A stretch of DNA of 64,000 nucleotides from Piromyces finnis finn (Eukaryota; Fungi; Neocallimastigomycota). Of the stretch, positions 29,826-64,000 are shown piece after piece. Where the stretch lies: assembly GCA_002104945.1 (NCBI GenBank), contig MCFH01000039.1, positions 462,827-526,826 of the forward strand. Direction: 5' to 3'. Position 1 is the stretch's first letter, and each line of letters begins with the position of its first letter. The notes beneath the pieces were generated by a model. That model ran no database searches, was not told the origin of the DNA, and saw only the letters and a program-made list of their open reading frames with translations. The position numbers and the translations under genes were made by a program.

Positions 29826-30539
29826 TTGTTTATATTTATACATTTATTAAAAGAAATTATTTGTATTAAACTATTTAAATTCAATTTATTTACTAAAGAA
29901 TTTTCTAAACTTAAAAATAAAGCTTTGATTTGTTTACTATATGGTTGATTATATTTCAAACATATATTTAATTTAAATAGTTTATTTAATATAAATATTA
30001 ATTGGAAAGCCATTTATTATCCGGAGATAAATAGTGTACCAATTAATTAATATTAAACAAACCAATTAATAAAATAAGATTCATTTAAATAATTATTAAT
30101 ATTATTTTTAACAACTTATTAATATCGATATTTAAAGAAAATTGTATTATTATTATATTTTATTAATATTTATATTTATATTATTATACATGTATAACTT
30201 AAATTATATTATTATTATACTTTATTAATATCAATATTATATTAAAAATGAAAATATAAATAAATTGAACAAAGAACAACTTTAAGAAATTCTTTGTGAG
30301 ATTATTAATACACATTTTTATATAGTAAATTTAGTATTTAAAACTGATAATTATCATTTATTTATATTATAAAAATTAAATAAAATAATTATTTAGAAAC
30401 TATATTTATTATTCTTTTATTTTTTAAAAAGGATTATTATTTATTATATAATTAAGCCTATCCTAACCTAATAGACTTAATTATAACTTGACAATTAAAT
30501 ACATTATTCTATTAATACAATATTTTACAAGGAGGGCCA

Positions 30540-32882
30540 TGTAACAATGTTACGGTTCAAATAAGATATCATAATTTTATATAATATGAATATTTTCGTT
30601 ATTAATATTATTAATATATTTTTAATAATATTTTTTTTATTTTTATTGTACTTATTTTTTTTTATGATCCAATTTTTAGTAAATTTTTCTAAAAATTGCG
30701 TACTTTTTGAAACTATCCATTATTTCAAATTTAATGATTTGGGATAATTAAAATTTTAAATTAATTCCATTCATAATATATGGATCATTCATTGTAACTG
30801 TAAAAGTATAAAATTTAAAACAGATTTTATACTTAAAACAAAACAATTTTTATTAACACAAAAATAAAAAAATAAAACATTAAATTTTTATTTTAAGAAA
30901 ACATTTTATTTAAACTCTTAAAAATATTATTAACTATATAATAGTTAATAATTAAAAAATTGAAAATAACAATTACATCGATTTAATAAACAAAAATTAC
31001 ATGTATTTATATTTTTTCATAATTATATTCTAATATATTATTCTATTTAAATAAACATATATTTAATATAAAATAAACAAAACTAATTTAATTAAATAAT
31101 AAAATAACAGAACTAAACTAAACTAATTCATTATACTTTTAATTCAATTTGAGTAAACTCAAAATTGAATAAAGCCCATGTATTTTCTATAAATTAATTT
31201 AATATTATCAATACTATTCTTAATATATTTCCTATTGAAATATAAATAAATCTATTTTTAAAACTAAGTTAAAATTATTAAACTATTCTAAATTTAAATA
31301 AAAAAGTATAATCTTCTAAAATTAAATAAAAAGTATTTAAAAAATATTTTAATTAAAATTCTTTTATTCCTTAAATTTAAATATTTATCTTAATTTAATT
31401 TTAACGGAATTATTATAAAACAATTTATTATTAAATTATTCCATAAAATTTATTCAAAAATTTTATAATAAGTTTTACTAAATATTAATTTATTATTTAA
31501 TAATTAATAATTAATTATTAAATAATCTAAAGATATATCTTATATCTTTACAGTAACGTATATTAATTAAATCATTAATATATATTATGAATCATCTATT
31601 AATATTAGAACAGATAAATTTTTAATTTATATTTAATAGATTTTTAATTTACTTTACATGTAGTGTTTTTGATTTCATATATTAACTAATAGACTTAGAG
31701 CATATAATAAATTTATATTATCCTATTAATTATGTCCTTTTTTAGACAAAAAGATTAATTTTTATGTAAAGGTATCTTCTATTAGTTGTGTAACAATTAC
31801 TTTTCTTACAACTATTTAGGTTCATTCCTTAACAGAATGCCCTTCGTTAAAACTCAAGCTACTCCATTGCTGAGTTATATTTAACAATATTTTTAAAGTG
31901 TACATTTCTATTCATTAGTACACCAGTAGTTGGATCAGCTAACACTACTGTATTAAACTGTTTCTGAACCACTTTGAGAGGTCCCACAAAGGCTCTAACT
32001 TTGCTCTACTAAAGTTCCGTACTAGAACTAAGTCACCTATTCTTATTTTCTTAGCTTTACTCATTCCTAACATTTTCTCTCTTCTTGTAGACCAATATTT
32101 ACTAGCCGTTTTGACATTCTCCGCAGCTTCCAAGGTCCACCGGTAGTGCTTGATGAATTTTTCTAAGAGAATTTCATCAGAAGTTTTACTTTGATCTTTC
32201 GTAGGTCTGGCAGCAATATCAAAAGGCTGCTGATCCTCCCTACCATAAACTAATTCAAAACTAGAATGGTTAGTTACTGTATTCTTGGATGTTCTTAGCG
32301 CTCAAAGAGCAGAAGGCAAAACTTCATCCCAATCCTTATTTTCTTTTCCTAAGAGTCGCAGTAACTTTCCAATTTCCTTGTTCCTATTCTCTGTTAGTCC
32401 GTTACTTTCTGGATGGTAGGGAACTGTAAATTTAACATATACATCATACAAACCCAAAAATATCTTGGTCATATCAGAAGTAAACTGTGCTCCATTATCC
32501 GTAGTGATAATTTGGGGTATTCCATGCCTTGCGAAAACATTTATTAAAAATTTTATTACATCTAAGGAAGTGATAGACTCTACCGCTTCGGTCTCTACCC
32601 ACTTAGTAAAATAGTCCACTGTAACTATTATATTGTTTATTGTTCTTTGTCTTTGGTAGTGGACCAATAATATCCAAACCTAAATGTACAAAGGGGCCTT
32701 TTACCTGCGTTGGACGATTTTCCGCTGGCTCAGGATAAGGTTGGGCCGATTTAATTAACATTTTTCATATTTGCTAATAATCCTTTTGATGTCAGTTATC
32801 ATATCATTCCAATAATAGCTTTTCTTTAGTCTTTGGTAAGTTTTATAGTAACCTTCATGGCCAACATTATGAGCTTGGTATA
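30540..32882 (-). mobile_element. 3' remnant of a non-chromoviral gypsy: integrase pseudogene, PPT and probable 3' LTR (31834 down to ~30540)
   Basis: VTVDYFTKWVE...FARHGIP..TDNGAQF..YHPESNGLTE, related to 14538-15308. AACGAAGGGCATTC is followed by TGTTAA. The far end of the LTR is tentative. Confidence 0.8.
30799..31552 (+). mobile_element. Solo LTR, A subtype (754 bp)
   Basis: TGTAAAAG...TATCTTTACA with TSD GTAAC. Confidence 0.93.
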
Positions 32883-33563: not shown

Positions 33564-34967
33564 ATACTAATAGAGGATGGAAGACTAGATATGGTAGTTT
33601 ATTCATAACAACGAAATTCTTACAGATGAAACTCCTTGCTGAGCCTGAATTAATTAACAGCTTAATTTTTAATGTTTTGTTGTTCATCTTGATGATGAAA
33701 GTGGAATTCATTGTATTTGTTCTATTTGGCGTGTAATTGACTGAAAGTATTTCATTGTTTTTCTTGCTTTATTGAATATTTTTAATCTTTTTGTTTGTAA
33801 AAGTTTAAAACAGATTATAAAATTTTTACAATAAAATAATAAACACAAAATAAATAAAAAGAAACAAGAAAATAAATTATTTAAAATATCTCTTTTATTA
33901 ATTTTATTTAGTTAATAACTAAATAATAGTCAATTACAATTATATCGTTTTAATTAAGAAATTTCTACATGTATTTATATTTTTTGTAAATTATATTTTA
34001 ATATACTATTCTATTTAATTACACATATATTCAATATAAAATAAACAAAACTAAACTAAAACTAATTAAATACACTTTTGATTCAATTTGAGTAAACTGC
34101 AAATTGAATACAGTCCATGTATTACCTATATATTAATTAAATATTAATAATACTATTTATTATATATTTGCTATTAAAAAATGCTAATTTAAAACTACGC
34201 TAAAGTTATTAAACTAATTTTAATTAAATAAAAACTTTTTAAGATTTAATTTGAATATTTATCCAAATTTCATTTTTAACCTTGATATTTTAAAATTAAT
34301 TATTATTTAATTATTCCATAAAATTTATACAATAAATTTTATAAATAATTTTTCATTAAAATATCAAAATTATTATTAAATAATTTTAAGATATATTTTA
34401 TATCTTTACATTGTTGTTATCTATCTTGTAAAAGTTGTATAATTTTCTTCCGAAGGACTTCTTATCTTTATGGTCACTCTTGGGCTTCTTGTTATGAAAA
34501 TTATTAATATTATCATTAATAAGACATTTTTTGTCGAGATTAATAATAACATTAGTAGCTTCGAATACCGTCTTGGGTCTGTCAACTTCGTCGAATTCCC
34601 TTTGCACTTCTTCGTGAAGGCCTCTCCTGATAAGATCAACGAATACTTCGTCAGGCCATCCGATTCTCTTAGAGAGTCTTCTGAACTCGATTGTATAATT
34701 GGCTGCCTTCCCTAAATGATGCTGTTTAAGGTTTAAAAGTTGTTCTAAGAATATACTTTTGTTCCTTTATATCCCCAAAGTTATCCAGCAATAAGTTTTT
34801 GAATTCTTCATAACTTAGTACTAATAGTACTATCAGCAATGAGAAATAACCCCCATTTTCTTGATGCACCTTGAAGTTTATTAGCAACAAAAGAACATTT
34901 AGATTCGTCTTTTTGGAATGTGTTAGAATGTTCCTTGAAGAACATTTCACATTATCCAAGGACTTCA
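33564..34967 (-). pseudogene. Gypsy gag-protease remnant (chromovirus-type gag), split by solo LTR 33796-34410
   Basis: FVANKLQGASRKW, YTIEFRRLSKRIGWPDE and LLINSGSAR read in shifting frames. Confidence 0.75.
33796..34410 (+). mobile_element. Solo LTR, A subtype (615 bp)
   Basis: TGTAAAAG...TATCTTTACA with TSD TTGTT. Confidence 0.93.
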
Positions 34968-34969
34968 CT

Positions 34970-35392
34970 AATAAATTAAAATTCTCAATTCAAACCCCTA
35001 GTTTTAGTATTGTTTTGTAAGAGAAATAGATATATAGTATATAAATATTAAATGATTAATATATCAATAATACATGGGCACATATTCAAATTGAATAGTA
35101 CTTAATTTGAATTGCCAATTGTATTTTACTAAAAATAGTTATAGTTTTTATTAATAATTATAATTTTAGTGTAGATTTTAAATAATAATATAAGAAATAA
35201 GTAGTTATAATATAAATGTATTTAGGAAAAATATAAAGAGAAGATATTTTTCATCATTTTATCGATGCAATTGTTATTAACAATTTTATTACAATAGATT
35301 AATAAAAAACTATTTTTTATAAAATATATTTTATATTGTTATTGTAATAGATTAGATATCCTAATCTATTCGGTTTAGTGTCTGTCTTTACA
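34970..35392 (-). mobile_element. Solo LTR, B subtype, 3'-truncated
   Basis: Reverse complement starts TGTAAAGACAGACAC and is colinear with 46087. Confidence 0.85.
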
Positions 35393-35843: not shown

Positions 35844-36480
35844 TTCTAGAATTCGTCTGGAATACGAATTCCTAGGAAGGGCGTTGTGAAGATATTAACT
35901 GGATTTAAAATAAATTCAGATAATATCTATAATCAATTAAACATAAAAATTATAATTAAATAATTCCAATAATTATTTTAAAACACCTTTCGAAGTCACC
36001 TTTTAAATTTTGATTCAGTGAAAGGGTTATGATTTCAAAAATTTAATATCTACACTATAATCTTTAGCCAAAAATAAACAAACACGAAACAGGGCGTAAC
36101 TTACCAAAATAAAACTAAGTATATTAGAAAGCGTAAGAAAAAAGATACATTTTGGTACAATCGAGGTCCTTCTAACTGATCATTTAAGGAAGTTATGATC
36201 ATTTAAAGATTTTAATAGGTAAATTAAAATCAATATGATATCAAGTATGGATCATAAACCTTTCTTATAACTTAACAGAAATTAAAAATATATCAATAGG
36301 AAATTTAGTTATATTAATTTAATTAATGATGATGACTGTTACTAAAAATAGAACTAAACCATTTAGGTGTTAACTGTTATATACATTAAATAATTTTAAT
36401 TATTATAAAATATGTTAACTACTAGTTTTACTAGAAATAATTTTTAAAATAATAATTATTTAATTATAACAAATATGTTA
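35844..36480 (+). mobile_element. Isolated gypsy 3' end: pre-PPT hairpin, PPT and LTR starting at 35885
   Basis: GAATTCGTCTGGAATACGAATTC-CTAGGAAGGGCGT-TGTGAAG. LTR right end not determined. Confidence 0.6.
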
Positions 36481-36484
36481 TGTT

Positions 36485-37041
36485 TGTAAAGATATCAAAC
36501 GCCACATATTGATATCTTTAATGTAACTTAAGCCATAAACATTATTGTTTAAGTTACACAAATTATATTACAGAAAAAGAAAATAGGTCATAATTTATTT
36601 TTAATGTTTAACAAATAAATAAATTTTTCAATTCAAACTTTTAGTTTTAGTATTGTTTTGTAATAGAAATATATAGTAAATAATTATTAAATGATTAATA
36701 TATCAATAATACATCATCACATATTCAAATTGAATAGTATTTAATTTGAATTGCCAATTGTATTTTACTAAAAATAGTTATAGTTTAAATATTTATTAAT
36801 AATTAAAATTTTAGTGTGGATTTTAAATAATAATATAAGAAGTAAATAATTATAATATAATATAAATGTATTTAGGAAAAATATAAATAGAAGATATTTT
36901 TCATCATTTTATCGATGTAATTGTTATTAATAAATTTCTATTAAAGATATTATTAAAACAATTTTTATTTTTATTTTTTAATTATGGTGTTATTGTAATA
37001 GAATAGATAACCTAATCTATTCTTTCTGTGTCGACTTTACA
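36485..37041 (-). mobile_element. Solo LTR, B subtype (557 bp), flanks do not match
   Basis: Both termini present (TGTAAAGTCGAC...GATATCTTTACA on minus). Flanks ATGTT / ATAAC are not a TSD. Confidence 0.88.
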
Positions 37042-37310
37042 ATAACAATTACCCAACGAAATCCAAGAATACGTTAGGGTATCTACCGCCGAAGGACAAG
37101 AAATTGAATAAAGTAAACTATTAATATCTTCAAGGACTTAGTAATACAAAACTTATTCGACACTGCTTTACAGAACGCGTTTGAATAACATTTGTATTAG
37201 AATAGATTGTATTAGTGTAATTAAAAAAAAATAAAAAAAATTTAAGATTACTTACTTGAAACAGTAGTAAGAAACAATTTTTATTTTATATTATATTATA
37301 TTTTGAATTG

Positions 37311-39566: not shown

Positions 39567-42500
39567 ATGTTCCCAAATTCCATCAGGAAATTTCTGTTTT
39601 TTCTACTGATTCTACTGATTGCAATTACTCTTCTTAGGAGTATCGGAATTATTCAGAGAGGTAGGACTGCAAGGCCTTTTTCTTTTAGGATGGGAGGAAT
39701 CATCAGATTTATCGGCCATGATATCATCCATGATATCATTTTCATCTTCCAAGTTTGGATCAGGATCATCCATAGATTTATTGTTGTTTGGAATATATGA
39801 ATGTGAGTCACGTGCAATATCAGGAGAATCAGAAATTTTTGAATTTAAATTTATGTAATCATTAATATCCATAGTGTCTGAGTTGGTAGAATTATCCTGT
39901 GTAACATTAGAATTTATGCTAGAATTATGACGTGGATTATTTGATTTATCATCCAATAGAATGTTATCATTTTTATTTTGAATTTTTGAGTCAATTTTTG
40001 AAAAATCTTTATTAATAAAAATTTTTTCACGATGATGATCAGAAATTGAATTTTCAGTAGTATTTTCACCATCATTTTTGGTATTAGAAATATTTTCAGT
40101 GGTGAAGTCATCAGTTGAAGAATTATTATAATATTCATGATTTTCAATAATTTTATTTTTGTTTTTGTCAGCAAGAGTTTTACCAGGACAAACGTTATCG
40201 GAACCAGGAGTTTCAGGATATTGGTATTTATTATTTTATTGATATTATTTGAAATTTTACAATTTTTCTTTTCGAAATTGCAATTGTCATTTGCAATTTC
40301 TTCTAAAACTTTTAAAATGTCATTAGTAAATTTATTTTTGTCAAATTTCGAATTTGAATTATTATTTTTGTTGAGTATCTACATTCATGTATAAAGAATT
40401 TGTTTTTGAATTGTTCATTAAATTACTTTTTGAACTTTCCTTAGTTTGAGAAATAATATTAGTCTTTTTATTACTTTCTTCCTCTTTCCTTTCAGTTTTT
40501 TCGTTATAAGTTAAATTTTTATCAACCAGGTCCTCGTCCATAGTACTTATGTTGTCTTCATTTACCATTTTTTCTTCTACTTCTTCTTCATTTACTTTTT
40601 CTTCATTTACTTTTTCTTCTATTACTTCTTCTCCATTGTTTTTAAAGTGGAAATTCACCTTCTTCTTGGAAGTAGTCCTTTCTGTATTATTGTTCTCATT
40701 ATTTATATTTGAATTTGTATCTGTAGTGTTGTTGTTCTTGCTGTCAACAACTTTCTCTTTTACACCTTCTGTGTTATTGTTGTTCTTCGATGAATCTGAG
40801 GAGACCTTATTGTCGTAATTGTTGATATTATATGAATCGTTGAAAGAGAAATAAGGATCGTTTATATTTTTATTTTTATAAGTGTATTGTGCTGGCTTAT
40901 CTTCACAGCATTCTATTTCTCTAGAATAGTGAATTTTAAGTTTATCACCACATATTTCCATGACGATATATGAGTGATATATTTCACTGAACCCAAGAAA
41001 TATCACTTCCTTTGAGTTTGGTGCAAATTTTGACTTTTTAAGGGAATAGTCCTTAAAGTAACATATACATCCAAATACCTTTAGGTATTTTAGATCGGCT
41101 TCCTCGTTGGTAAATACTTCGTCAGGGATTAAATTATTATTTCCTTGGTGTGGTATTTTGTTGTAAATATAACAAGAGTATTTTACAGCAAAACTCCAAA
41201 AGTCTTCAGATAAATTAGCCCAATATAAAAGTGTTTTAGTATAATTTTGAATAGCCTGGTTTATTCTTTCTGCTTTTCCATTTAATTCATGTACGTAAGG
41301 AGGTGAGTTTATCTTAGATATACCGTTTTCCTTACAATACTTTATAACTTTACTACTGTTATATTCTTTTGCACCATCTGTCTTGAATGTTTTGACTTTA
41401 TATTGGTCAAAAGTGTTATTGACATTCTTTAGGAATTCAATAATGATATCAGGTGCTTCAGATCTTGACTTGAGAGTATAAATCCAAAGTTTTCTTGAAT
41501 ATTCATCCAGTATAGTCATAAAATATTTCTTATTGTTTATGGATGAATTAAACGGGCCTGAAATATCGGAGTGAATAGTCTCTAGAGCTCTTCCGGCTTT
41601 AGGTACGGTTTTGTTGTGGAGAGACTTCTTCATTTTTGATATTTTGCAGTCTAGGCAAGGCATTACTTTAATTTTATGTTGATTTAGATATTTCTTCAGA
41701 TCGTTCTGGTAGAAATGGCCTAATCTCTTATGCCATATATCTAAATCATCTTCAAAATTTGCAATAAATGGTTCATTTTTCTTTTTATTAATGTTTATGA
41801 GTTTAATTTTGAATTGGTTTAATTCATTTGAGTATGTTTGCATTATATTTTTATTTTCAGAGTCCTTGAAAATAAGTCTGACTTTCCCATCGTCAGTAAT
41901 ATCAATAATGCTTCTTAAACCAACTTTAGCAGGTCCTACACCACTAATTAAATTCTTGCTAACTTTATCTGAGTACAAAACTTTTTCTAACTTGTAAGTT
42001 TTGTCTTTTATCTTGAACTCATATGAACCATAACCACTAAATTCACAGGTAGTTCCATTTGCACATCTAAGTTGGATGTGTTCTTCTGTGAAGTTTTCTA
42101 AGATGTCCTTATCATTAACTATATGTTCGGCGGCACCAGTATCGTAGAACCATTCGTCGTACTTATTTTCTCCATACACATAATCTATATTCTTTACATT
42201 AGGAGAGTCTTCTTTTGTAGCTTCATCTTTTTCAATAAGGTAGATACTTCTTTCCGTTAAAGGCCTAATATCTTCAAATTCTACGTTAATACCGTAACTT
42301 TCGTTGTCGTCATAGTTTTCGACGAAATCTACTTCTTGTTCGAATTTCTTTTGTTGTTTTTTCTTGTGAACTTGCATCCCTTATTGTGAATTTCTTTTGG
42401 ATTTGTTTTGGTTATAGGCCTTATTATTACTGTTTCTTCTTTGTTCTCTTTCCATTTTGGCCTTTTGATTATATTCACACATTTCGGTGGAATGACCATG

Positions 42501-43684
42501 TTCACAGCAGATATGACAGTAGGTACGGTGGCTTCTATTTATATTTCTTCTGTTACCGTAGCTTTTATTCTTTGATTTGTTTTCTCTACTAACAAAATCA
42601 ACATCCATTGGATCATCAACTTCGTCATCTTCATCTTGGTCGTTGTTGATTCAATCCTCGAAGTAGGATTTGGCATTGATGTAACTTTTGACCTTCTCAT
42701 AGAATTGATCAGAAGTTTCGTCTAAAGTTATATTCAATTGGTTCTTGACACTTCGTGGAAGGGAATTGTACATAAATTTCAATTTTTCCCTTTCACTTAA
42801 GGACATTCTTTGTTCAGACATCTCAAGGAAGATTTCCTTGATTTTATCAATGGTTTTACTGACTTTGCTTACATCTTCAGTATGTAATTTTCTTAACTTC
42901 TTTAGCCAGTATTCAATGTTTGCATTAGCGTTACCGTATTTTGTATTCAACTTCTTGAATACTTGATAACAGCTAGTACTATGACCAATCTCTCTGAGAA
43001 TCTTCTCATCCACATTTTGAATGATCATAAGGTGTGCATCAGCATTAAGACTTTCAGCTGCTGATACTATCTCGGCCTTATAAATTGGAGAGTTTGCCAA
43101 TTTATTGGCGGCTACAACATTAATGTTATTAATGTTGCTGTTTGGGTTTGCGTCCTCCCACATAGCTTTAGTGAAGGTTTTGTAAACGGATGCGAGGAAG
43201 TTATTAGTACGGTAGTTGGCAATAATTTTTACAATAGCCATAGTTTAAACATCTTTGAGATTAAAATCTATCACAAAGCTGTCGTCTTTGATGGTTCCAA
43301 CAATGTCATAATCAAGATAGCTAATTAGACCCTGTCTAGAAGCTGACTTGATTAAAAGACTCCAAGTGTCAAAGTTGGATTTTCCATGAAGACGTTGATC
43401 ATTGGCTAAAATTAATTGCTGGGACATACTAAAATTTTAAACACATAAAATTTTTGCTTTAAATTTTTCTTAAGAAATTTTTATTATTGATTAGAGTTTG
43501 AGACTCTTAATCTGTGAAATAAATTTAATTAATAAATAATTTTATTAATAAGGTTAACAAAGAGAAAAAGTTACATTGTAAATATTACAGTTATATAATG
43601 AGATATAAGGTCATGTGAACATATAAAATGAAATAAAATAAATAAAAAAAGCTTTCTCTACAACACGTAGACATTACGTTTACA
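39567..43684 (-). mobile_element. Ty1/copia retrotransposon, copy 2 (5' LTR from 43513, PBS, gag-PR-INT; RT/RNase H missing)
   Basis: Gag starts at 43427. 671-aa PR-INT ORF (YDTGA, WHKRLGH, HSDISGP, TDGAKEY, ELNGKAER). Far end of the LTR (~43684) is tentative. Confidence 0.92.
43499..43512 (-). promoter_or_regulatory. PBS GATTAAGAGTCTCA, complementary to the tRNA-Lys(CUU) anticodon arm
   Basis: Abuts the LTR end (CA). Its complement TGAGACTCTTAATC contains the CTT anticodon loop of eukaryotic tRNA-Lys. Confidence 0.75.
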
Positions 43685-44071: not shown

Positions 44072-44837
44072 AATCTAGCTAAAACCAAATCTTGAGAGAA
44101 TATTTTAGTAATTATAATATTAAACAAAAAAAAAAAAATATGTCACAAGAAAAGATGGCCATAATCCTTACAGGTCCATCAAATTATTTTGAATGGATGG
44201 ACTACATATGGGCCGAATTTTCAAAAGAAAAAATTATAAATTATCTTTATACAAATGGTATCAAAGATATTGATACCAAGAACCTTAAAGAGGGTGAAGA
44301 TGAAAAATTGGCTCAAAATGGAACAGTCAAATTTATCATCATTCACTCTATCTCTAGGAAAATTCATTCTGAGGTGGTAGGCATGGAGTCTGTAACAACG
44401 CGAGAGACTCAGGTTAACACAATACTAATTAACTATTTTTTATATTAATAGTATATTTTATTAATAATTTGATTATTTAATATTATTAATACAAATTAAC
44501 CTTAATACTAATTCTAAAAACTAAATTTACATGAATTTTATAAATTATTTATATCTACTATTTATAAATATTCTTATTTAATAATTATGAATAAACATTA
44601 TTCATATTGATTGGTAACTTCAATTATTTAAATAAAAAGAAGAAATAAAAATAGACAAATATTATGGATTAAATATAGCGATTGCTATATTTAATCCATA
44701 ATATTGAGAACCCGGAGTCGAATACATGACAAGTAGGTCAGCGTCCAACAACCTGACGGCGAAGCCAGCTTGGAGAACCCCGAAATACAATTTTGGTGAA
44801 AAGGTACAAAACCTTTATACGTTACAATGCCCTCCTT

Positions 44838-47800
44838 CTAATGTCGGATTCCAGACGACATTGAATGCGGTTTGTCTGGAAACTTTTTGTGGAAAGCTTT
44901 CAGTAATTCGGGGGCATGTATGTCTTCTGCGTTTTCCCATGAACGATCTTCAGCAGGATATCCTTTCCAATCAACAAGATACTGAAGTGCTCTGTTGTTA
45001 ATTCTAGAATCCAATATTTCGTTTACTTCATACTCTAGTTCATCGTTAACTAAAATGGGAGGCGGCTTCTGAATGTCTCGGTTTTCAAAGGTATTCTCAA
45101 TATAGGGCTCGAGATTAGATATATGGAAAATGGGGTGTCTTCGGTCTCGTTTGGATAATTTTAACTTGAAATTTTGATTTTCCAAGCATTCAATAATTTC
45201 ATATGGTCCCGATTTCCTAGGATCTAATTTCTTCACATTTGTTTTTCCTTTGGGATAGAGCAACCATACTTTGTCGCCTACATTTAAACTGGGAGGCTCT
45301 TGTCTTTTCTTATCAGCATATTCTTTAAACTTTTCTTGGGCTTCTTTCATATTTTCCTTTAGTTTTTCAAGTGTCGTACCAATGTCACATACAACTTTTT
45401 CAGCTTCAGGAACTAGGGACGTTATTGGAAGATCAATTAAGAATTCTGGATCATACTTTAAGTTGGCCTTGAAAGGTGACATTTTAATGGATTCCTGAAT
45501 AGCATTGTTATAGGCAAATTCTGAGAGTGAAATATACGAACTCCAGTCAGAATGTTTACCATTAGTGAAACATCTGAGATACTGTTCAATTATACTATTA
45601 AGCCTTTCCGTTTGCCCATCAGTCTGTTGGTGATGAGCAGTTGAAAGTTTGGATTCACAGTACAGTAGCTTACAAAAATGTTGGAAGAATTTGGAATTGA
45701 ATTGTCTACCGCGATCTGATATAATTTCCTTTGGAATACCATGTAGTCTGAATACATTATCCAAGATAAGTTGTGCAGTTTCTTCAGCTGAGGGAAGCTT
45801 TCTAAGTGGAATGAAATGACCCATCTTCGATAATCTATCCACCACTGTTAGGATAGCAGAGTAATTGTTCGATTTTGGTAGATCTGTAATGAAATCAAGA
45901 GATATTGAAGACCATTGTTTTTCGGGTATTGAGAGTGGTTGAAGAAATCCATATGGTTTATGATTGCTGTTTTTGTTTCTATTACACGTATCACATGAAT
46001 TTACAAATCTGCGTACATCCCCCCTCAAGCTCTTCCACCAAAAGTTTCTACTAATAAGTTCGAGAGTTTTCCTAATACCGAAATGTTGTACAGTTGACAC
46101 TAAAAGAATAGATTAGGATATCTATTCTATTACAATAACACTAAATTTAAAATAAAAATAAAAATTATTTTATTAAAAAATATCTTTTATTATAATAGAA
46201 ATTTTATTAATAACAATTACATCGATAAAATGATGAAAAATATCTTCTATTTATATTTTTCCTAAATACATTTATATTATATTATAACTATTTATTTCTT
46301 ATATATTATTATTTAAAATCTACACTAAAATCTTAATTATTAATAAATATTTAAACTATAACTATTTTTAGTAAAATACAATTGGCAATTCAAATTAAGT
46401 ACTATTCAATTTGAATATATGCCCATGTATTCTTGATATATTAATCATTTAATAATTATATACTATATATCTATTTCTATTACAAAACAATACTAAAACT
46501 AGGGATTTAAATTGAGAATTTTAATTTACTTGTTAAACATTAAAAATAAATTAATAATTTATTTTGTTTTAAACTTTAATTATTAATAAATAAATTATAT
46601 CTCATTTTCTTTTTCTTAATATAATTTGTGTAACTTAAACAATAATACTTATGGCTTAAGTTACATTAAAGATATCAAGTTGAGGCGTTTGATATCTTTA
46701 CAAATGTCCGGAAGAAGGGGAATTATGATGGGATTGAAGAATATCAACACGAAGGACTTCGGGAATGTAAATCTTATAGTTGTAAAGAAGAATACCATCC
46801 TTGAAAGTGAAAGGAGAATTGGGGAGATTAAGTCTTCTGGAGTTGTTTGTAGAATTGAAGTAAGGATCTGAAGGTAGGGCTGAACGAATCTTTTCTAATA
46901 GAGAGCTATCACTTAGAGAAATAACGGAGGAAATGCTAGTGAAATTAGAAGTGTTAAGAATTGAACCTGAATTAGAAACTTTATGTTCATAATCAGGTCT
47001 ACGAGACAAGCAATCAGCTCTATTCTTCGAACCAGGTTTGTATTTAATAACAAAATCAAAACGAGAGAAGAAGATACTCCAGCGGATATGACGTTGGGAA
47101 AGATGATCTGGTTTACGCTCAAAAAGAAGATTACGATGATCGGAGAAGACAGTGATTTGGTGATTGGCACCTTCAAGATGGTGCCTCCAGGTTTGAAAGG
47201 CTTCTTTGATAGCAAGGAGTTCCTTGTCGTAAATTGGGTAATTACATTCGGCGTTGGTTAAAGCTCTCGAGAAGAAAGAAACAGGGTGAAGAGAACCATC
47301 AAATTCTTGAAGAAGGACACTACCGATAGCGAAGTTACTGGAGTCGGATTCAATAATGAAAGGTTTGTTCGGATCGGCATGGCGGAGGAGACTGGCGGAA
47401 AGAAAAGCATTTTTTAAATTATTGAAAGCAGAGATGGTAGAAGAGTCCATAATGAAAGGAACATTTTTCTTTAATAATCGAGTCAAGGGCACAGCGATTT
47501 TTGAAAAATTTTTTATAAAGCGCCTATAGTAATTACAGAGACCCATGAATTGTTGGATATGTTTTGTATTTTGGGGAAGAGGCCAATTAAGAATGGCGTC
47601 TACTTTATTCTTTTTCATTGATATACCAGAACCAGAAAGATGGTGACCAACAAAATCAATTTCAGGGACATCGAATTCGCATTTTTCGAGTTTAACATAG
47701 AGGTTATTCTTGAGAAGACGTTCGAGAATTAAGCGAACATGCTTATGATGTTCCTCTAATGTATTGGAAAAAATGAGAATATCATCAATGTAGGCGAAGG

Positions 47801-49105
47801 CAAAGTCGTCGAGGAAATCACTTAAAATATCGTTGATAAAATGCTGGAAGGTAGCCGGGGCATTTTTAAGACCAAACGGCATGACTAAATACTCAAAATG
47901 ACCAAATCTAGTGTTGAAAGCCGTTTTATATTCATCACCTTCCTTAATTCGAACAAGGTTGTATGCGGAACGAAGGTCGAGCTTAGTGAAGAATTTAGCT
48001 CCACTGACTTTTTCAAGAAGATCATTGATTAGTGGAAGAGGATAGGAGTTCCAAATAGTGATATCGTTGAGTTTTCTGTAGTCAATGCACATCCGAAGCG
48101 AATTATCTTTTTTTCGAACGAATAAGACAGGGGCGCCGGCTGGGGAGATAGACTTCCGAATGAAGTTCTTTTCTAAGTTTTCTTTAATATAATCCTTAAG
48201 TGTCTTTGTTTCCTCCACGGTGAGAGAATAAATTGGGCCGTAAGGAAGAGAAGAGTCGGGTTTTAAATCGATTCTACAGTCGTAAGGTCTATGCAGGGGA
48301 AGTTCGTTTGCTGCTTTTTCAGAAAAGACGTCCTTAAAGTCAATGTAAAAATCCGGAATAGAGGGTGTTTTTGAAGGTGAATCTATAGAGGGACAAGTAA
48401 TATAAATTGCAAATTTTTGAGAATATGACGTTGGAGAACAGTGAGAAGTCTAGAATCAGGTTTACTTACCGGAGAGGAAGCAGGGATGGAGGAATCAATA
48501 GAAGGTGAAGAGGGAGTCGAAGAGATTGAGTGAAGATGAATATCCGAATTATTTGTTGAAACACAAGAGTCATTACACTGAGGGTTTTCGCAATTAGGTT
48601 TAAAATATGCTTTATTAGTTTCAAATTTAGATACATCTTTTTTAAAATACAATTTTTTACAATCAAAATCTACGACTGCCCTATTTGAATTGAGCCAAGG
48701 GGTACCAATAATTGGAGGTAGAGAATCATCATCTGTGATAATGAATTGAATAGAAAATGATTCATCTTTAAATATAATCCTAAGAGGTTTAGTCATTCCC
48801 AAAATATTAGAAGTTTTCCCACCACAGTCAATGATTCCAGATATTTTTGAAACCGATACTGGAATACTATATTTCTCAATAAAAAATTTGGAGATAGTGT
48901 TTTCAATAGCACCTGAATCAACCAAGATTGAGATATCGCATGGGTTATTATTAATCATAATGGTGAACGGGAAAATAAGGTATTTATCTAAGGGAATGAA
49001 TGGATTATAAGATTTTGGATGGTGTGTATTATTGGTAGAAGGCTTAGCTTCAAAGGGGTTTGTACTAGAGTAAGATTTAGGCTCAGAATCTATTCTAGAA
49101 GTTAG
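44838..49105 (-). pseudogene. pol: Chromovirus Pol (PR-RT-RH-INT-chromodomain), with one indel near 48450 and a solo-LTR insertion at 46087-46702
   Basis: ILVDSGA, AYIDD, SDSSNFAIG, SLDFITDLP, SDRGRQF, GQTERLN, GPY and chromodomain motifs. Confidence 0.92.
46087..46702 (+). mobile_element. Solo LTR, B subtype (616 bp), inserted in the integrase zinc-finger region
   Basis: TGTACAG...GATATCTTTACA with TSD AATGT. Removal restores SGHFGIRKT. Confidence 0.95.
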
Positions 49106-49935
49106 TTTTTTGGAACTTTAGGACAGGAAGTGACCAAATGATCCTTAGCACCACAATACATACACAGACCTTGATCACGACGTTTTTGTTTTTCTTCAGC
49201 AGATAAAGGACCACGTCTTTTACCATCAGATTGAGTGGAACGGGTAAAAGGATTTTGATCCTCATTTCTCATCTTTCGCACAAATGGATTATAAAGAGAA
49301 GCACCACGGTAATTTCTGGAAATATTATGTTTCTTAAGAAAGCTTGAGTCGATTATCATAGCTCTATGAAACGCAGCAAGAAGGGTTGGTATATCCTCAC
49401 CACGCATTAATAACTCGGCTTTGACCTCATCATGCAATCCATCAATAAATTTTGAGACAAGGGCCGGTTGATTCCATCCAAGATGGATTGAGGCTTGTTC
49501 AAAATCTTTGATGTATTGAGATACTTCACCTATACGTTCTTGTTTCAATGCCATAATAATTTGGTTGGCATTGAATACAATGTCAAGATTACCAAATACT
49601 CTTCTAAGTAAGGCAACAAAGCTAGGATAACTGTTCATAACTGGATTTCTTTCTTGGATCAAGTGAGCTACGAAGAGTTTGGCATCCCCTTTCATATAGG
49701 AAAACATAAAAGCTGTCTTATGGGCGTCCGAGCGGAATAGAATGCTTCTTAATTGAAAGATTAATTCACAATGTTGAATAAATCCTTCAAGATCCACACT
49801 TTTTCCTGAGAATTTGCTTGGATTTCCTATCGGTAGCACATAGTCCAGCATAAGAGGGTCCACAGGAGGTACTTGGCTTTGTTGAGAGGAAGAAGCTGAG
49901 GCGGTAGTGAAAATGTTGAAAGGGTTATAAGACAT
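49102..49935 (-). CDS. gag: Chromovirus Gag (277 aa), CCHC knuckle
   Basis: Intact ORF with CMYCGAKDHLVTSC. Ends in A AAA AAC TAA. Confidence 0.9.
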   Translation of the reverse strand: MSYNPFNIFTTASASSSQQSQVPPVDPLMLDYVLPIGNPSKFSGKSVDLEGFIQHCELIFQLRSILFRSDAHKTAFMFSYMKGDAKLFVAHLIQERNPVMNSYPSFVALLRRVFGNLDIVFNANQIIMALKQERIGEVSQYIKDFEQASIHLGWNQPALVSKFIDGLHDEVKAELLMRGEDIPTLLAAFHRAMIIDSSFLKKHNISRNYRGASLYNPFVRKMRNEDQNPFTRSTQSDGKRRGPLSAEEKQKRRDQGLCMYCGAKDHLVTSCPKVPKN

Positions 49936-51592
49936 ATTTAAAATGTTTTATTAGAAAATGGTTTTATTAATTTTATAAAGGGTTAAGTTATTATTGTGTT
50001 AAGGTAAGTCTTTTTTTTTTTTTAGAGAATTAGTATTGTAACAACGCGAGAGACTCAGGTTAACACAATACTAATTAACTATTTTTTGTATTAATAGTAT
50101 ATTTTATTAATAATTTGATTATTTAATATTATTAATACAAATTAACCTTAATACTAATTCTAAAAACTAAATTTACATGAATTTTATAAATTATTTATAT
50201 TTACTATTTATAAATATTCTTATTTAATAATTATGAATAAACATTATTCATATTGATTGGTAACTTCAATTATTTAAATAAAAAGAAGAAATAAAAATAG
50301 ACAAATATTATGGATTAAATATAGCGATTGCTATATTTAATCCATAATATTGAGAACCCGGAGTCGAATACATGACAAGTAAATCAGCGTCCAACAACCT
50401 GACGGCGAAGCCAGCTTGGAGAACCCCGAAATACAATTTTGGTGAAAAGGTACAAAACCTTTATACGTTACAGAGTCCGCGTTTTTAATGCTCAAGAAAA
50501 TTCAAAGAAATTATGGAGGAGGAGAAAATGACACTACCTATTGGATGATGAAATTGAATTCATTAAAAACCAGTAATGAAAAGGAAATAACCAACGTTTT
50601 AGAAGAAATGTCCAATATCTTTGACACGTTGGAAAAGACTGACTGCAAATTAAGTAACACGGAAAAATTAAAATATCTATATAATGCTCTCCCAGGAGAA
50701 TATATGAAAAAATACATTCTGAAGGACACAACAAAATATGAAGAATTGAACAAAGAAATCCAAGAAGACATCAAAAACCGCGCCTATGTGTTAGACTGGA
50801 CTGTAGATAATAGAAGGGATGATCCAATGGAAATTGACTTTGTAAATAGAGGATCAAATAGTAAGAAGCATTATACAAAGGACAAAATGGACCAACATAA
50901 AAACAAAAAATATTGTGCCATTTGTGAGAAAAATAGACACACTACAAATGAATGTTGGTTTAATGGTAGAACAAATAAAAACAAAAAACAAATCCCACGC
51001 AAGGATAATTCCAATAAAAATAGAAGGTATTATTCAGCTCAAAAAGAAAAGTTTAAAGGAAAGTCCACCAACTATGTTGGATATGTTCAAGATCCAAACG
51101 ATTATTATAACTCTAATTTGGATTTTCAAGATATAAAAACTATGTTTTTTGAAGATAATAATACCATAGGAGATAAAAATAACAATATTAATGATAATGT
51201 AAACTTAAACAAAAAATTATATAAAGATAAGAAATATAAAAACTACATAAAAAATGTGTTCAATTTGTGTTATAAGGATTTTCGTGTTAATAACGTATTA
51301 AATTTCAAAAAGTCATCATGGTTGTATGACTCAGGTGCAGGAGAACACCTTACTAGTAATAAAAATTTACTTATTACTTTTAAAAAAAAAATAATATTGA
51401 GGTGTGCTAATAATACTTCCGTTGTATTTGAAGGATACGGAGAATTTCATTTTTATATAAACAGTCATAAAATAGTTTTTAAAAGAGTCTTATACTCAAA
51501 GGAAGTATCAAGAAATATCATAAGTGGTGTTGAACTTGCAAAAGTGAATATAAAAGCTATTACAGATACAGATAAAGATAACAGAGTAAGAC

Positions 51593-54880: not shown

Positions 54881-57800
54881 TTATTTCCAGCATGTACCAA
54901 ATTCAGATTGGCATCCATCTTCAACAGCACAATATTCAGATGACTTACCACACCAACCATATTTACTACAACAGTATCCTTCCATACATTTACCATAGTC
55001 TTTACCACATCTCCATGAATCATCTTCACTTGTCTTCTTTTTATCTTCTTCACTTGGTTTCTTTTTATCTTCAGTTGTAATTATAACACTTTCTTCAGTT
55101 TTTTCTTTTTCAACATTTACTGTAACGGAACTCTCAGTTTTATTATTAAGTATATTGGTTCTTCCGTTACATATACCAAATTCAGATTGACATCCTTCTT
55201 CAACAGCACAATATTCAGAAGACTTACCACACCAACCATATTTACTACAACAATATCCTTCCATACATTTACCATAGCCTTTACCGCATCTCCATGGATT
55301 TTCTCTATTTATAGAGTTTTCTTCAACATCACTATCTTCATTATCACCTTCTGGAATTTCATTTATTTCTTCATCACTGTCTTCATTATCACCTTCTGGA
55401 ATTTCATTTATTTCTTCATCACTATTTTCATCAACTCCAGAAATACCAACATCTTCATTAACTGTAGTAGTTGGTTTAACAATAGTAGTAACAGTAGTAA
55501 CAGTAACTGGTTTAGTGATAATAGTTTTAATAGTAACTGGTCGGGTAATAGTAGAGGTAATAATAACTCGTTTGGTAATAGTAGAGGTAATAGTTTTTTC
55601 TTCAAATACAGTAGTAATTGGTTTAATAGTAACAGTAGTAATTGTAGTTGGTTCAATAGTAGAAGTAGTAATAGTAGTTGATTCAATAGTAGAAGTAATA
55701 ATTGTAGTTGGTTTAGTAATAGTAGCTTCCTCAGTTATAGTAGTTTTTGGCTTAGTAGTGGTGGTGGTAATAGTAGTGTTTGGCTTAGTAGTGGTGGTGG
55801 TAACAGTAGTGTTTGGCTTAGTAGTGGTGGTGGTAACAGTAGTTGTTGTAGTTGTAGTTGCAGTTGTTGCATTATTTTCAACATATTTAATGGTAATCTT
55901 ATCACAGACTGGTTCTTTTTCAAACGTTAATGATATGGTGTATTGGCATTTGTTTTTATCAGACATTTTAATATCATAACTTTCGATAGTATTACCGGAT
56001 TCACTTGAAACTTCAATATTTTCGTTATTTAAAGCAAATTCCTCTTTTTCACAATTTTCATCTGATAATGTAACTAGAGTAATTAATTTATTACCTTCAA
56101 CTTTAGTATTGTTTGAATCTACGTTTCCTCCTTCAAATTCTACTTCTGTTTTACAAGTAGTAGGGGTTGTAGCGGTAGTTGTAGTGGTGGTGGTGGTGGT
56201 AACAGTAGTTGTTGTAGCTGTAGTTGCAGTTGTTGCATTATTTTCAACATATTTAATGGTAATCTTATCACAGACTGGTTCTTTTTCAAACGTTAATGAT
56301 ATGGTGTATTGGCATTTGTTTTTATCAGACATTTTAATATCATAACTTTCGATAGTATTACCGGATTCACTTGAAACTTCAATATTTTCGTTATTTAAAG
56401 CCAATCCCTCTTTTTCACAATTTTCATCTGATAATGTAACTAGAGTAATTAATTTGTTACCTTCAACTTTAGTATTGTTTATATCTACGTTTCTTCCTTC
56501 AAATTCTACTTCTGTTTCACAAGTAGTAGGGGTTGCAGCGGTAGTTGTAGTGGTGGTGGTGGTGGTAACAGTAGTTGTTGTAGTTGTAGTTGTAGTTGTT
56601 GCATTATTTTCAACATATTTAATGGTAATCTTATCACAGACTGGTTCTTTTTCAAATGTTAATGATATGGTGTATTGGCATTTGTTTTTATCAGACATTT
56701 TAATATCATAACTTTCGATAATATTACCGGATTCACTTGAAACTTCAATATTTTCTTTATTTAAAGCAAATTCCTCTTTTTCACAATTTTCATCTGATAA
56801 TGTAACTAGAGTAATTAATTCGTTACCTTCAACTTTAGTATTGTTTATATCTACGTTTCTTCCTTCAAATTCTACTTCTGTTTCACAAGTAGTAGGGGTT
56901 GCAGCGGTAGTTGTAGTGGTGGTGGTGGTGGTAACAGTAGTTGTTGTAGTTGTAGTTGTAGTTGTTGCATTATTTTCAACATATTTAATGGTAATCTTAT
57001 CACAGACTGGTTCTTTTTCAAATGTTAATGATATGGTGTATTGGCATTTGTTTTTATCAGACATTTCAATATCATAACTTTCGATAGTATTACCGGATTC
57101 ACTTGAAACCATGATATCATCCTTATTTAAGATACCATTTTCACAGTATTCCTCCTTTGGGAGGGTAACAATACTAGTTAAGTCATTACCTTTAACAGTA
57201 ACTTCATTTGGAATTACTTCACCGAAATTTATATATTCTACTTCATTTTCACACTTTTCTTCAACACGTCTAACGGTAATCTTATCACAGACTGGTTCTT
57301 TTTCAAATGTTAATGATATGGTGTATTGGCATTTGTTTTTATCAGACATTTCAATATCATAACTTTCGATAGTATTACCGGATTCACTTGAAACCATGAT
57401 ATCATCCTTATTTAAGATACCATTTTCACAGTATTCCTCCTTTGGGAGGGTAACAATACTAGTTAAGTCATTACCTTTAACAGTAACTTCATTTGGAATT
57501 ACTTCACCGAAATTTATATATTCTACTTCATTTTCACACTTTTCTTCAACACGTCTAACGGTAATCTTATCACAGACTGGTTCTTTTTCAAATGTTAATG
57601 ATATGGTGTATTGGCATTTGTTTTTATCAGACATTTCAATATCATAACTTTCGATAGTATTACCGGATTCACTTGAAACCATGATATCATCCTTATTTAA
57701 GATACCATTTTCACAGTATTCCTCCTTTGGGAGGGTAACAATACTAGTTAAGTCATTACCTTTAACAGTAACTTCATTTGGAATTACTTCACCGAAATTT

Positions 57801-60645
57801 ATATATTCTACTTCATTTTCACACTTTTCTTCAACACGTCTAACGGTAATCTTATCACAGACTGGTTCTTTTTCAAATGTTAATGATATGGTGTATTGGC
57901 ATTTGTTTTTATCAGACATTTCAATATCATAACTTTCGATAGTATTACCGGATTCACTTGAAACCATGATATCATCCTTATTTAAGATACCATTTTCACA
58001 GTATTCCTCCTTTGGGAGGGTAACAATACTAGTTAAGTCATTACCTTTAACAGTAACTTCATTTGGAATTACTTCACCGAAATTTATATATTCTACTTCA
58101 TTTTCACACTTTTCTTCAACACGTCTAACGGTAATCTTATCACAGACTGGTTCTTTTTCAAATGTTAATGATATGGTGTATTGGCATTTGTTTTTATCAG
58201 ACATTTCAATATCATAACTTTCGATAGTATTACCGGATTCACTTGAAACCATGATATCATCCTTATTTAAGATACCATTTTCACAGTATTCCTCCTTTGG
58301 GAGGGTAACAATACTAGTTAAGTCATTACCTTTAACAGTAACTTCATTTGGAATTACTTCACCGAAATTTATATATTCTACTTCATTTTCACACTTTTCT
58401 TCAACACGTCTAACGGTAATCTTATCACAGACTGGTTCTTTTTCAAATGTTAATGATATGGTGTATTGGCATTTGTTTTTATCAGACATTTCAATATCAT
58501 AACTTTCGATAGTATTACCGGATTCACTTGAAACCATGATATCATCCTTATTTAAGATACCATTTTCACAGTATTCCTCCTTTGGGAGGGTAACAATACT
58601 AGTTAAGTCATTACCTTTAACAGTAACTTCATTTGGAATTACTTCACCGAAATTTATATATTCTACTTCATTTTCACACTTTTCTTCAACACGTCTAACG
58701 GTAATCTTATCACAGACTGGTTCTTTTTCAAATGTTAATGATATGGTGTATTGGCATTTGTTTTTATCAGACATTTCAATATCATAACTTTCGATAGTAT
58801 TACCGGATTCACTTGAAACCATGATATCATCCTTATTTAAGATACCATTTTCACAGTATTCCTCCTTTGGGAGGGTAACAATACTAGTTAAGTCATTACC
58901 TTTAACAGTAACTTCATTTGGAATTACTTCACCGAAATTTATATATTCTACTTCATTTTCACACTTTTCTTCAACACGTCTAACGGTAATCTTATCACAG
59001 ACTGGTTCTTTTTCAAATGTTAATGATATGGTGTATTGGCATTTGTTTTTATCAGACATTTCAATATCATAACTTTCGATAGTATTACCGGATTCACTTG
59101 AAACCATGATATCATCCTTATTTAAGATACCATTTTCACAGTATTCCTCCTTTGGGAGGGTAACAATACTAGTTAAGTCATTACCTTTAACAGTAACTTC
59201 ATTTGGAATTACTTCACCGAAATTTATATATTCTACTTCATTTTCACACTTTTCTTCAACACGTCTAACGGTAATCTTATCACAGACTGGTTCTTTTTCA
59301 AATGTTAATGATATGGTGTATTGGCATTTGTTTTTATCAGACATTTCAATATCATAACTTTCGATAGTATTACCGGATTCACTTGAAACTTCAATATTTT
59401 CGTTATTTAAAGCAAATTCCTCTTTTTCACAATTTTCATCTGATAATGTAACTAGAGTAATTAATTCGTTACCTTCAACTTTAGTATTGTTTATATCTAC
59501 GTTTCTTCCTTCAAATTCTACTTCTGTTTCACAAGTAGTAGGGGTTGCAGCGGTAGTTGTAGTGGTGGTGGTGGTGGTAACAGTAGTTGTTGTAGTTGTA
59601 GTTGTGGAGGTGGTGGTAGTACTAATTGAAGAATCAAAATTAGGTAAGCATGCTTTAAATTCGTATAAATCAACTTCTAATGCTGAATTATCGTGATGAT
59701 ACTTTTCTGCTATTACTTGACCATTATGATGACCATTGGAACCAATGATGGTGGCATTTGGTGCTAAAATTGTGCCATGTATCGTAAAACTAGTAATTTT
59801 AATTTCTTCTGCATTTGGAAAATTCCATATAATTTTATTAGCATATTTTTCTAAATTAACAATATTTCCGTCTTTAAAATTATAATTTTTACTCTTCATA
59901 TTAATAATAATTTTATCATAGTTTTCAAGATCTATATTTTTCAAAAATTGTTGATTTGTTATATCATTAAATATTGTTTCATCACCATAATTAATAACAA
60001 GTGTGTTTCCTTCAGTCTAAAAATTATTAAATACGAATATGAAAATTTAGTAAATAAATAAAAATAACTTTTATATTTATTTATTTAACTTACATATGAA
60101 CTATCTAATTTAGCTAAATTATTTGATAAATTTAGCATTTCAGTTTTAACTTCTTCAAATGGGAAAATAGTATTAATATCAGATACTTGAGTTATATTGC
60201 AACCTTGATATCCTACTCCATTTTTATAAATCTCTTGATATGCAACATTAGTCATGAAGGTGATATTGCCTTCAATAGATTTACTAACTAATGAATAATG
60301 ATCAGGAGTTTCACATGAAAGATCATTCCTATCATTACGATTGGTAAGACTTATTATACCATTTATTTTTTCCTTAGCAGCAATTGCACCTCCACCACTA
60401 TGAGCTGAACTATAAGGTGATATAAATTCATTAAATAAAATATAAGAAAATTTTGATATTCCATGTCCAAATGGATCAGTACAAACACTATCTCTTTTAA
60501 TATTTGCTCTTTTTTGATGTAATATATTATTAAAAGATACAGAATTAGTTTTTGAATCTATGGCTCTAGCCTTAATAGTAGCAGTTAAAACTTGAACTAC
60601 TACTATAAAAATTAATATTTTCAAATGATCTCTAAAAAAAATCAT
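54881..60645 (-). CDS. Secreted surface protein (~1,895 aa): signal peptide, choice-of-anchor-A-like domain, Thr linkers, tandem ~95-aa Cys-containing repeats, mucin-like region, two hevein/CBM18 chitin-binding domains; join(60094..60645, 54881..60016)
   Basis: Hydrophobic N-terminus. Phase-0 GTAAGT...TTAG intron at 60017-60093 joins the two ORFs in frame. IIWNFPNA..HGTILAPNA..NGQVIA motif. Two WRCG..G.C..GYCCSKYGWCG..EYC..GCQSEFG.C modules. Confidence 0.88.
57060..59390 (-). repeat. Eight apparently identical 285-bp coding tandem repeats, flanked by four variant units with Thr linkers
   Basis: Identical antisense ORFs recur every 285 bp from 57111 to 59106. Confidence 0.97.
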
Positions 60646-61119: not shown

Positions 61120-61870
61120 AAATTTATTTTACTATATAATAAATATTTTTATTAAATTAATACGAATATCCCACTATATAGAATCTTAATTACCATTTAT
61201 TTTTTATTTCTTTATAAGAAAAGTTGTGGCAATTCATTTATAAAAAAGAGTTTATAATTTAATTTTATCTTTATCAAATCAAAATCTTTCAATTAAAAAA
61301 AAAATTTTTTTAAATATTAAAAAAAGATGGTATTTAAATTAAATTACAAATGACCAAAGTTTTTTATTGACGATATATAATATGATTGTATTGTTAATAT
61401 ATTTTTAATATATTATCTATATATTAAAATATAATTTATTATTAGGTTTTTTTTTTGGTAATCAATTTTTACTAATTTATTTTACTATAGAATAAATATT
61501 TATATTAAAGTAATACAAATATCACACTATAGTATCTTAATTACTATTTATTTATTATTTCTTTATACTATTATTGCTTTATATTATTATTGCTTTGTCT
61601 TATTATTTCTTTATAAGAAAAGTTGTGGCAATTCATTTATAAAAAAGAGTTTATAATTTAATTTTATCTTTATCAAATCAAAATCTTTCAATTAAAAAAA
61701 AAATTTTTTTAAATATTAAAAAAAGATGGTATTTAAATTAAATTACAAATGACCAAAGTTTTTTATTGACGATATATAATATGATTGTATTGTTAATATA
61801 TTTTTAATATATTATCTATATATTAAAATATAATTTATTATTAGGTTTTTTTGGTAATCAATTTTTTACT
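61120..61870. repeat. ~400-bp tandem duplication with a ~260-bp near-identical core
   Basis: TTTCTTTATAAGAAAAGTTGTGGC...GGTAATCAATTTTT occurs at ~61207 and ~61606. Confidence 0.9.
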
Positions 61871-63740: not shown

Positions 63741-64000
63741 AAAAAGGTGTTAGTTTTATGTAGAAAGAATTTTAAATTAGTCTGTTATTGTCTTAAACTA
63801 TCTAAATATAAAACAAGATGCCTTTTTAATAATAAATTTGTTTGTTTATACTATATACATGTCTTATTTAAATAATTAATTGACTAATGATATGCCTGTT
63901 TGGTTTATATTAATCATTTGTATTAGATATTTTAAGAAGTTAAAAACTTCTTCATCATTAATTTATACAAAAGCACTAATTAAGTAATATCATATAATAT

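Follow-up and report, generated by a model that had tools for sequence, protein, structure and literature searches.

A conserved stem-loop beside the polypurine tract in four families of chromodomain retrotransposons, a candidate part of their plus-strand priming signal

A T-rich U-box or T-box lies 5′ of the polypurine tract in retroviruses and in Ty1, and the corresponding element is TCTT in fission-yeast Tf1, Tf2, Tosmo and Tcry (PMC10085805). At the 5′ end of Tf1, a folded RNA known as the 'pretzel' is recognized and cut by ribonuclease H (RNase H) to give the self-primer, and self-priming through a complement within the long terminal repeat (LTR) is a hallmark of the Tf1/sushi elements (PMC10085805). 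The active site of the polymerase and that of RNase H in the Ty3 reverse transcriptase (RT) are separated by about 13 bp (PMC5371799). Here we describe a stem-loop that precedes the polypurine tract of Ty3/gypsy retrotransposons with a chromodomain (chromoviruses) in a 64,000-nucleotide (nt) stretch of Piromyces finnis DNA (contig MCFH01000039.1, positions 462,827 to 526,826 of the forward strand), which is referred to as the window and to which all coordinates without a contig name belong. Ten copies of this hairpin from four families of chromodomain retrotransposons were identified, four of them in the window and six on metagenome contigs (L001–L004, L020 and L022). In what we consider the likeliest of several roles, the stem-loop and the purine tract that follows it would form an extended plus-strand priming signal, carried by the sense-strand genomic RNA of a self-priming, Tf1/sushi-like sub-clade of chromoviruses.

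The focal hairpin, at the 3′ end of a chromovirus on the minus strand, occupies 44840–44862 and has a 7-bp stem and a 9-nt loop in its 23 bases. Its 5′ arm runs from 44862 to 44856, its loop from 44855 to 44847 and its 3′ arm from 44846 to 44840, and this stem-loop is the minimum-free-energy structure within a context of 59 nt. The stem base is separated from the LTR by a purine-rich spacer of 13 nt (44827–44839, minus strand), in which 10 purines, the polypurine tract, are followed by three other bases, and the LTR starts directly afterward at 44826. With the pol stop codon at 44840–44838, the hairpin takes in the seven final codons of pol together with the first stop-codon base.

Four such hairpins had been reported in the window by an earlier reading of the sequence alone, and their letters were confirmed when all four sites were re-read. 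Two covariance models were used, R2 for the hairpin only and R1 with the purine tract included; R2 gave 39.7 bits to the focal copy. Copy 2 (29437–29455, plus strand, 36.9 bits) is noncoding and has a 5-bp stem with an LTR-like start 11 nt downstream at 29467, copy 3 (35849–35871, plus, 34.8 bits) has a 7-bp stem with an LTR-like start 13 nt downstream at 35885, and copy 4 (22477–22495, plus, 32 bits) has a 5-bp stem, two changed loop bases and a decayed purine tract before an LTR start at about 22513. The sequence-only reading had placed an LTR 11–17 nt behind each hairpin. The distances agree with what we measured (13 nt for the focal copy, 11 nt for copy 2, 13 nt for copy 3 and about 17 nt for copy 4), and at two of the four sites a second copy supports the LTR. 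The focal LTR has its partner, and the repeat after copy 4 is called an LTR because it recurs at 6489–6865 (minus), beginning where an LTR should and with unrelated sequence before it. No partner LTR turned up in the window for copy 2 or copy 3; the sequence downstream of both opens like an LTR (TGT...), and the LTR of copy 3 is deduced from its purine tract and TGT start only, with no remnant of pol nearby. A possible fifth 3′ end at 30479–30547 (plus) was matched by R1 (18.9 bits, expectation value E = 0.028) and not by R2: this site retains the purine tract and, at 30540, an LTR-like start, while its hairpin is eroded. Three of the four hairpin copies in the window are located in dead, decayed elements. 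Even where decay is advanced, the motif indicates where the interior of these elements truly ends on the 3′ side, which would aid annotation in very AT-rich genomes, whose LTR boundaries are difficult to place.

Relatives were sought with the integrase-chromodomain open reading frame (ORF), which retrieved two closely related proteins along with many others of about 50% identity. DNA was sampled for the close proteins, for matches with an amino-acid composition suggestive of an AT-rich host and for those closest to the second chromovirus of the window, the owner of copy 2; named vertebrate entries (Xenopus, Anolis, Pleurodeles) were set aside. The integrases of L001–L004 are 76–83% identical to the focal one, and an identical hairpin is present in all four. 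L020 and L022 are relatives of the second chromovirus and carry its version of the hairpin 205–245 nt past pol, with the closing pair broken in L022. Contigs L021 and L047 end before the expected site, and the motif is absent from L048, which belongs to a different lineage. Neither the protein-based scan nor the core-pattern scan of a viral contig collection returned anything.

The 15-nt core of the hairpin is nearly invariant over the ten copies, although the flanks of the different families cannot be aligned. Eleven of 29 hairpin columns are invariant in all ten copies and two more are nearly so. Within the focal family none of 21 hairpin columns varies, as compared with 148 of 294 in the upstream coding sequence, where each of 14 blocks of 21 columns has 8–16 variable ones. 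The probability of observing no variable column among 21 by chance is about 4e-7 if the columns are treated as independent.

The pairing statistics were computed from alignment A2 over ten pairs, namely the 7-bp stem and three lower pairs. Paired cells amount to 82.8%, compared to 68% in shuffled alignments, of which 0 of 500 reached the observed value, and to at most 48% when the partners were slid; the observed covariation score was likewise unmatched by any shuffle. Double changes are seen in seven of the ten pairs. At stem pair 4, five copies have G-C, four have U-A and one has A-U; at stem pair 5, A-U and U-A are found in five copies each, and neither pair is ever unpaired. Four cells are G-U on the sense strand and would be mismatches on the opposite strand. 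These compensatory changes, in excess of both the shuffle and the slide controls, suggest a conserved structured RNA element, at the low power that four independent families afford. Complements of the loop do not occur at a consistent place in three elements, and we found no conserved long-range partner. An 8-nt stretch upstream of the focal copy, complementary to part of the loop, was dropped as a candidate as it is not kept in L001–L004.

The motif is specific to these elements in the sequences that were searched. R2 scored the four window sites at 32–40 bits, and the next best match was 12; across 90 kb of other relatives, no match exceeded 14 bits. Pattern scans were conducted with degenerate patterns in the International Union of Pure and Applied Chemistry (IUPAC) code over the 13–15-nt core. 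The 13-nt pattern has four matches in the window against 0.09 expected, a comparison that is circular, with the pattern being derived from these very copies; independent support comes from the six further copies, which occupy the same position in contigs that were found through protein similarity. In bacterial and archaeal genomes the core pattern gave 24 matches versus about 30 expected, all of them in ordinary bacterial sequence and with no purine tract. Among these chance matches none of the 24 extends by three further stem pairs and three extend by two, while at least two further pairs form in all ten retroelement copies. Counted by family, extension by two or more pairs occurs in 4 of 4 as opposed to 3 of 24 (Fisher p ~0.002). 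The sequence-only reading had not recognized the hairpin as a described element, and our searches bear this out: Rfam has no match over 44840–44862 at E ≤ 10 and none in the window at gathering score, and a literature search of incomplete coverage, weak evidence of absence, revealed no equivalent. No earlier description of the hairpin was found in it, although signals adjoining the primer tract are already known as a kind.

The distance between the hairpin and the LTR is nearly constant. Measured from the stem base, the LTR starts 13 nt away in the focal copy, copy 3 and L002, and 14 nt away in L001, L003, L004 and L020. The distance is also 14 nt in the damaged L022 when counted from pair 6, and the values of 11 and about 17 nt in the decayed copies 2 and 4 refer to the last paired base. 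The second family has more than 200 nt of free noncoding spacer behind pol, yet its hairpin adjoins the purine tract.

Structures at this place were also observed outside the ten copies. Members of a sister AT-rich clade (L018:5335-5414, L049:1712-1791 and L050:1795-1874) have a different invariant 11-mer 12–14 nt before the LTR. Their stem lies 13–14 nt from the LTR in L018 and L050 and is largely lost in L049; the motif of L049 and L050 includes a 6-nt self-complementary stretch, and its closing pair is altered on both sides in L049. L019 has a hairpin with a 7-bp stem (L019:7067-7100) 10 nt before its LTR. In GC-rich relatives from soil (L005–L009), a pyrimidine run just after pol pairs with the first half of the purine tract. 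No hairpin of this kind precedes the tract of a gypsy element without a chromodomain in the window (13624-21225, minus). A small structure bordering the tract on its 5′ side seems to be common in this part of the chromovirus tree, with a sequence that is clade-specific.

We tentatively favor the explanation that the hairpin is a structured cis element upstream of the polypurine tract which helps to set the plus-strand primer cut. During minus-strand synthesis, RT would copy U3 and then the purine tract before it reaches the stem base. A pause at this point, or recognition of the stem-loop, would put the RNase H site about 13 bp behind the polymerase site and so on the junction of purine tract and U3, the point at which the primer has to be cut to give its 3′ end. 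The near-invariant loop would be read by a protein, most simply the element's own RT/RNase H, because an enzyme of the same group already cuts folded RNA for its self-primer. Folding in the cell, pausing or binding of RT and the effect on the cut position are steps that we infer. A stricter form of the proposal, in which the stem-loop is a molecular ruler whose clade-specific RNA structure is recognized by the RT/RNase H of the element itself and fixes the primer cut 13–14 nt downstream, is one we consider unlikely as it stands. If it were true, the differing invariant loops of sister clades would have co-evolved with their enzymes. As to the cis-acting signal suggested in the sequence-only reading, it finds support in the conservation, the covariation, the noncoding position in one family and the fixed spacing; of the roles then offered, selection of the polypurine tract is favored by the spacing, dimerization is disfavored by the lack of a conserved self-complementary stretch in the loop, and packaging may still be a role of the hairpin.

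Several points weigh against a function in positioning the cut. The 13-bp figure belongs to the Ty3 RT, which is not an enzyme of this clade, and in other relatives the spacing of the hairpin differs (10 nt for L019, about 5 nt for the soil contigs). Were the lower stem to form, by pairing of upstream pyrimidines with the purine tract, the effective stem base would also be nearer the LTR. The covariation amounts, by family, to about three double-change events in only four independent families, so that its power is low. The minimal hairpin is weak (−1.6 to −6.3 kcal/mol) and the fold z-scores of +0.1 to −2.2 are unremarkable. A context of 60 nt on either side yields predicted pairing probabilities of at most 0.02 for the second family and 0.35 for L002, while the wider-context prediction is high in most focal-family copies and in copy 3. 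Finally, since a pure roadblock needs no conserved loop, specific recognition is implied; by the same token, a simple roadblock would serve without one.

The main alternative to a priming function is that the stem-loop is bound by Gag or by a host RNA-binding protein and acts in the packaging, nuclear export, localization or stability of the full-length RNA, its adjacency to the tract being due merely to the short 3′ untranslated space. We hold this to be possible, if rather unlikely. A loop that stays invariant while its stem varies is a typical mark of recognition by a protein, and one loop common to four divergent families in one genome, and different in a related clade, fits a common partner. 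Export and packaging signals near the 3′ ends of retroviral RNAs do exist. However, the second family, with over 200 nt of spare spacer at its disposal, keeps the hairpin against the tract at 13–14 nt, a domain search of the focal gag ORF (E ≤ 0.001) revealed no zinc knuckle, and we know of no partner protein for the stem-loop. A protein-binding site accounts well for the loop but not for the fixed offset.

It is improbable, in our judgment, that the structure acts as single-stranded DNA during reverse transcription, for example by blocking spurious plus-strand initiation or by aiding strand transfer. A covarying stem would form equally well in DNA of the same strand, but the sense region upstream of the tract is made late, as plus-strand DNA on a duplex template, and in the minus strand the four G-U cells turn into mismatches and the conserved loop becomes its complement. 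To our knowledge, no step requires such a structure in single-stranded DNA at this place.

Somewhat more improbable still is the absence of any function, whereby the motif would have been kept by descent or by exchange of 3′-end modules and the palindrome would be incidental in AT-rich DNA. Short palindromes are common in such DNA, the thermodynamic signal is weak and three of the four window copies sit in decayed elements, all of which this explanation would accommodate. It would not explain a conserved island of about 15–23 nt amid flanks that cannot be aligned, the lack of variable columns in the focal family next to sequence in which about 50% vary, the double changes that preserve pairing or the failure of the bacterial chance matches to form the stem. 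A kissing-loop dimerization signal is very improbable: a stem-loop with an exposed conserved loop would suit it, as would the self-complementary stretch in the related motif of L049 and L050, but the loops of the four families share neither a palindrome nor a conserved self-complementary stretch, and the near-palindrome of the focal family, which includes the closing pair, is lost in the second family.

Protein coding can be given next to no credence as the cause of the conservation and is refuted as a sufficient explanation: the focal-family hairpin does encode the seven last residues of pol, but in the second family, 205–245 nt past pol, it is noncoding and coding cannot account for it; the open stretch over the hairpin never exceeds 35 amino acids in L020 and L022 or 47 in copies 2 and 4 (copy 3 has one of 103 amino acids with no attached homology), the encoded terminal peptide is present in only 2 of 120 homologous proteins, both of the focal family, and synonymous sites within the focal hairpin are frozen as well. 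The sequence-only reading had already argued this from the overlap of the focal copy with the last pol codons and the location of copy 2 beyond pol, which we place about 240 nt past the last pol homology (end at 29197).

The focal chromovirus is bounded by LTRs that are 99.1% identical, the 3′ LTR of 436 bp at 44391–44826 and the 5′ LTR at 50037–50472 (both minus), with the same five bases outside both ends of the element as a 5-bp target duplication. Its gag-pol region (44838–49935, minus) comprises capsid, protease region, RT, RNase H, integrase and chromodomain, with matches to RVT_1, RNase H, Integrase_H2C2, rve, SH3_Tf2-1 and Chromo (E = 3e-14); the gene order is that of Ty3/gypsy, with the chromodomain at the C-terminus of the integrase. 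Compared with L001, gag-pol is broken: it has two in-frame stops, a single nested insertion of a repeat and two frame changes, one of which is a gag/pol shift that L001 also has. A candidate primer-binding site at 50026–50036 (minus) is the exact complement of an LTR 11-mer at 50151–50161 (44505–44515 in the 3′ LTR), and L001 has the same pair of complements at about 2039–2049 and about 1925–1935. This site is a candidate self-primer of the Tf1/sushi type, and the pairing would predict the transcript start and the U3/R boundary as well. The nearest named protein matches of the element come from vertebrates ('Gypsy retrotransposon integrase-like' proteins) and from Mucorales (one protein), at 46–48% identity, and are consistent with a Tf1/sushi placement.

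Two further structures were observed in the U3 region of this element. A GC-rich block of about 75 nt (~44715–44790, minus) stands in the AT-rich U3, is kept across the focal family (L001–L004) and has three predicted stems. A tRNA-like nature of part of the block was considered and rejected, as ARAGORN found no transfer RNA (tRNA) and an Rfam scan of the window copy found no family; the window as a whole contains no tRNA gene. At 44658–44705 there is a long near-perfect hairpin whose sole Rfam matches are weak and microRNA-like; a hairpin of different sequence occupies the same place in the U3 of L001 (~1746–1795), which resembles covariation along some 20 bp of stem.

The second chromovirus (24368–29197, plus) extends from gag to the chromodomain and is decayed, with 19 in-frame stops and eight frame changes relative to L020 and with nested repeat copies inside. 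The N-terminal part of its RT was not detected, and its integrase is 44% identical to that of the focal element.

Other repeats are abundant in the window. A family of about 450–600 bp, with at least six copies at 82–94% identity, is represented at 34964–35392, at 36523–37046 and by an inverted pair at 22949–23474; further copies are nested in both chromoviruses, and they could be solo LTRs or a small non-autonomous element. The gypsy element without a chromodomain at 13624–21225 is young, with LTRs of 574 bp that are 100% identical, and an LTR related to it (82% identical) lies at 63413–63742. A copia-type fragment occurs twice in the same orientation, at 8–3378 and 39631–43003, about 39.6 kb apart and 96.6% identical over 3.4 kb. 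An ORF at 8715–9491 (plus) has an endonuclease/exonuclease/phosphatase domain, as in non-LTR retrotransposons of the long interspersed nuclear element (LINE) type. A pair of repeat units at 61201–61903, each about 300 bp long, 95–100% identical and spaced 399 bp apart, is found in a region of 13–17% G+C. An ORF of 1687 amino acids at 54881–59944 (minus) consists mostly of tandem units of 285 bp and 366 bp (55790–59550), flanked on one side by a chitin-binding domain and on the other by an adhesin-like one, and is probably a host cell-wall protein, the best indication in the window of a fungal host.

Among described systems, the U-box, T-box and TCTT are closest to the hairpin in position. Each is likewise conserved, acts in cis, borders the primer tract on its 5′ side outside the LTR and presumably helps to define the primer, and the Tf elements that own TCTT belong to the same self-priming Tf1/sushi group as the elements studied here. 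These boxes are short unstructured pyrimidine runs, whereas the signal here is a covarying stem-loop with a mixed, near-invariant loop of 9 nt. The bases before the tract are those of the 3′ arm of the stem, which are not T-rich in the better-preserved copies, and TCTT occurs in none. The inverted repeat of Sireviruses and other copia elements resembles the hairpin in being a secondary structure set precisely against the tract, conserved across divergent families and sometimes extending into coding sequence. It differs in its layout, with the left arm upstream, the right arm inside the LTR and the tract in the loop, in its arms of 19–28 bp and in the superfamily to which it belongs; both arms of our hairpin are upstream and the tract is outside the core hairpin, which separates it from the Sirevirus type.

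In simple retroviruses, 3′-proximal export and packaging elements are structured RNAs upstream of the 3′ LTR that are read by proteins; their size is far greater, and their spacing to the primer tract is not fixed. Should the hairpin prove to be a protein-binding site for packaging or export, it would be among the few such signals defined for fungal retrotransposons. The 'pretzel' of Tf1 offers a parallel of another kind, in that a priming step in the same group depends on an enzyme which recognizes folded RNA and not sequence alone. It lies at the 5′ end and serves minus-strand priming, whereas the hairpin lies at the 3′ end, and no sequence similarity was found between the Tf1-type 5′ structure and this hairpin. 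The fixed offset of the hairpin equals the active-site spacing of Ty3 RT and suggests that there is a second way of positioning the cut, based on structure, in a group of retroelements that already uses folded RNA for its other primer. If the stem-loop does act as a ruler, self-priming chromoviruses would employ structure-guided RNase H cleavage at both ends of their genome, at the 5′ end as in Tf1 and at the 3′ end through the hairpin described here.

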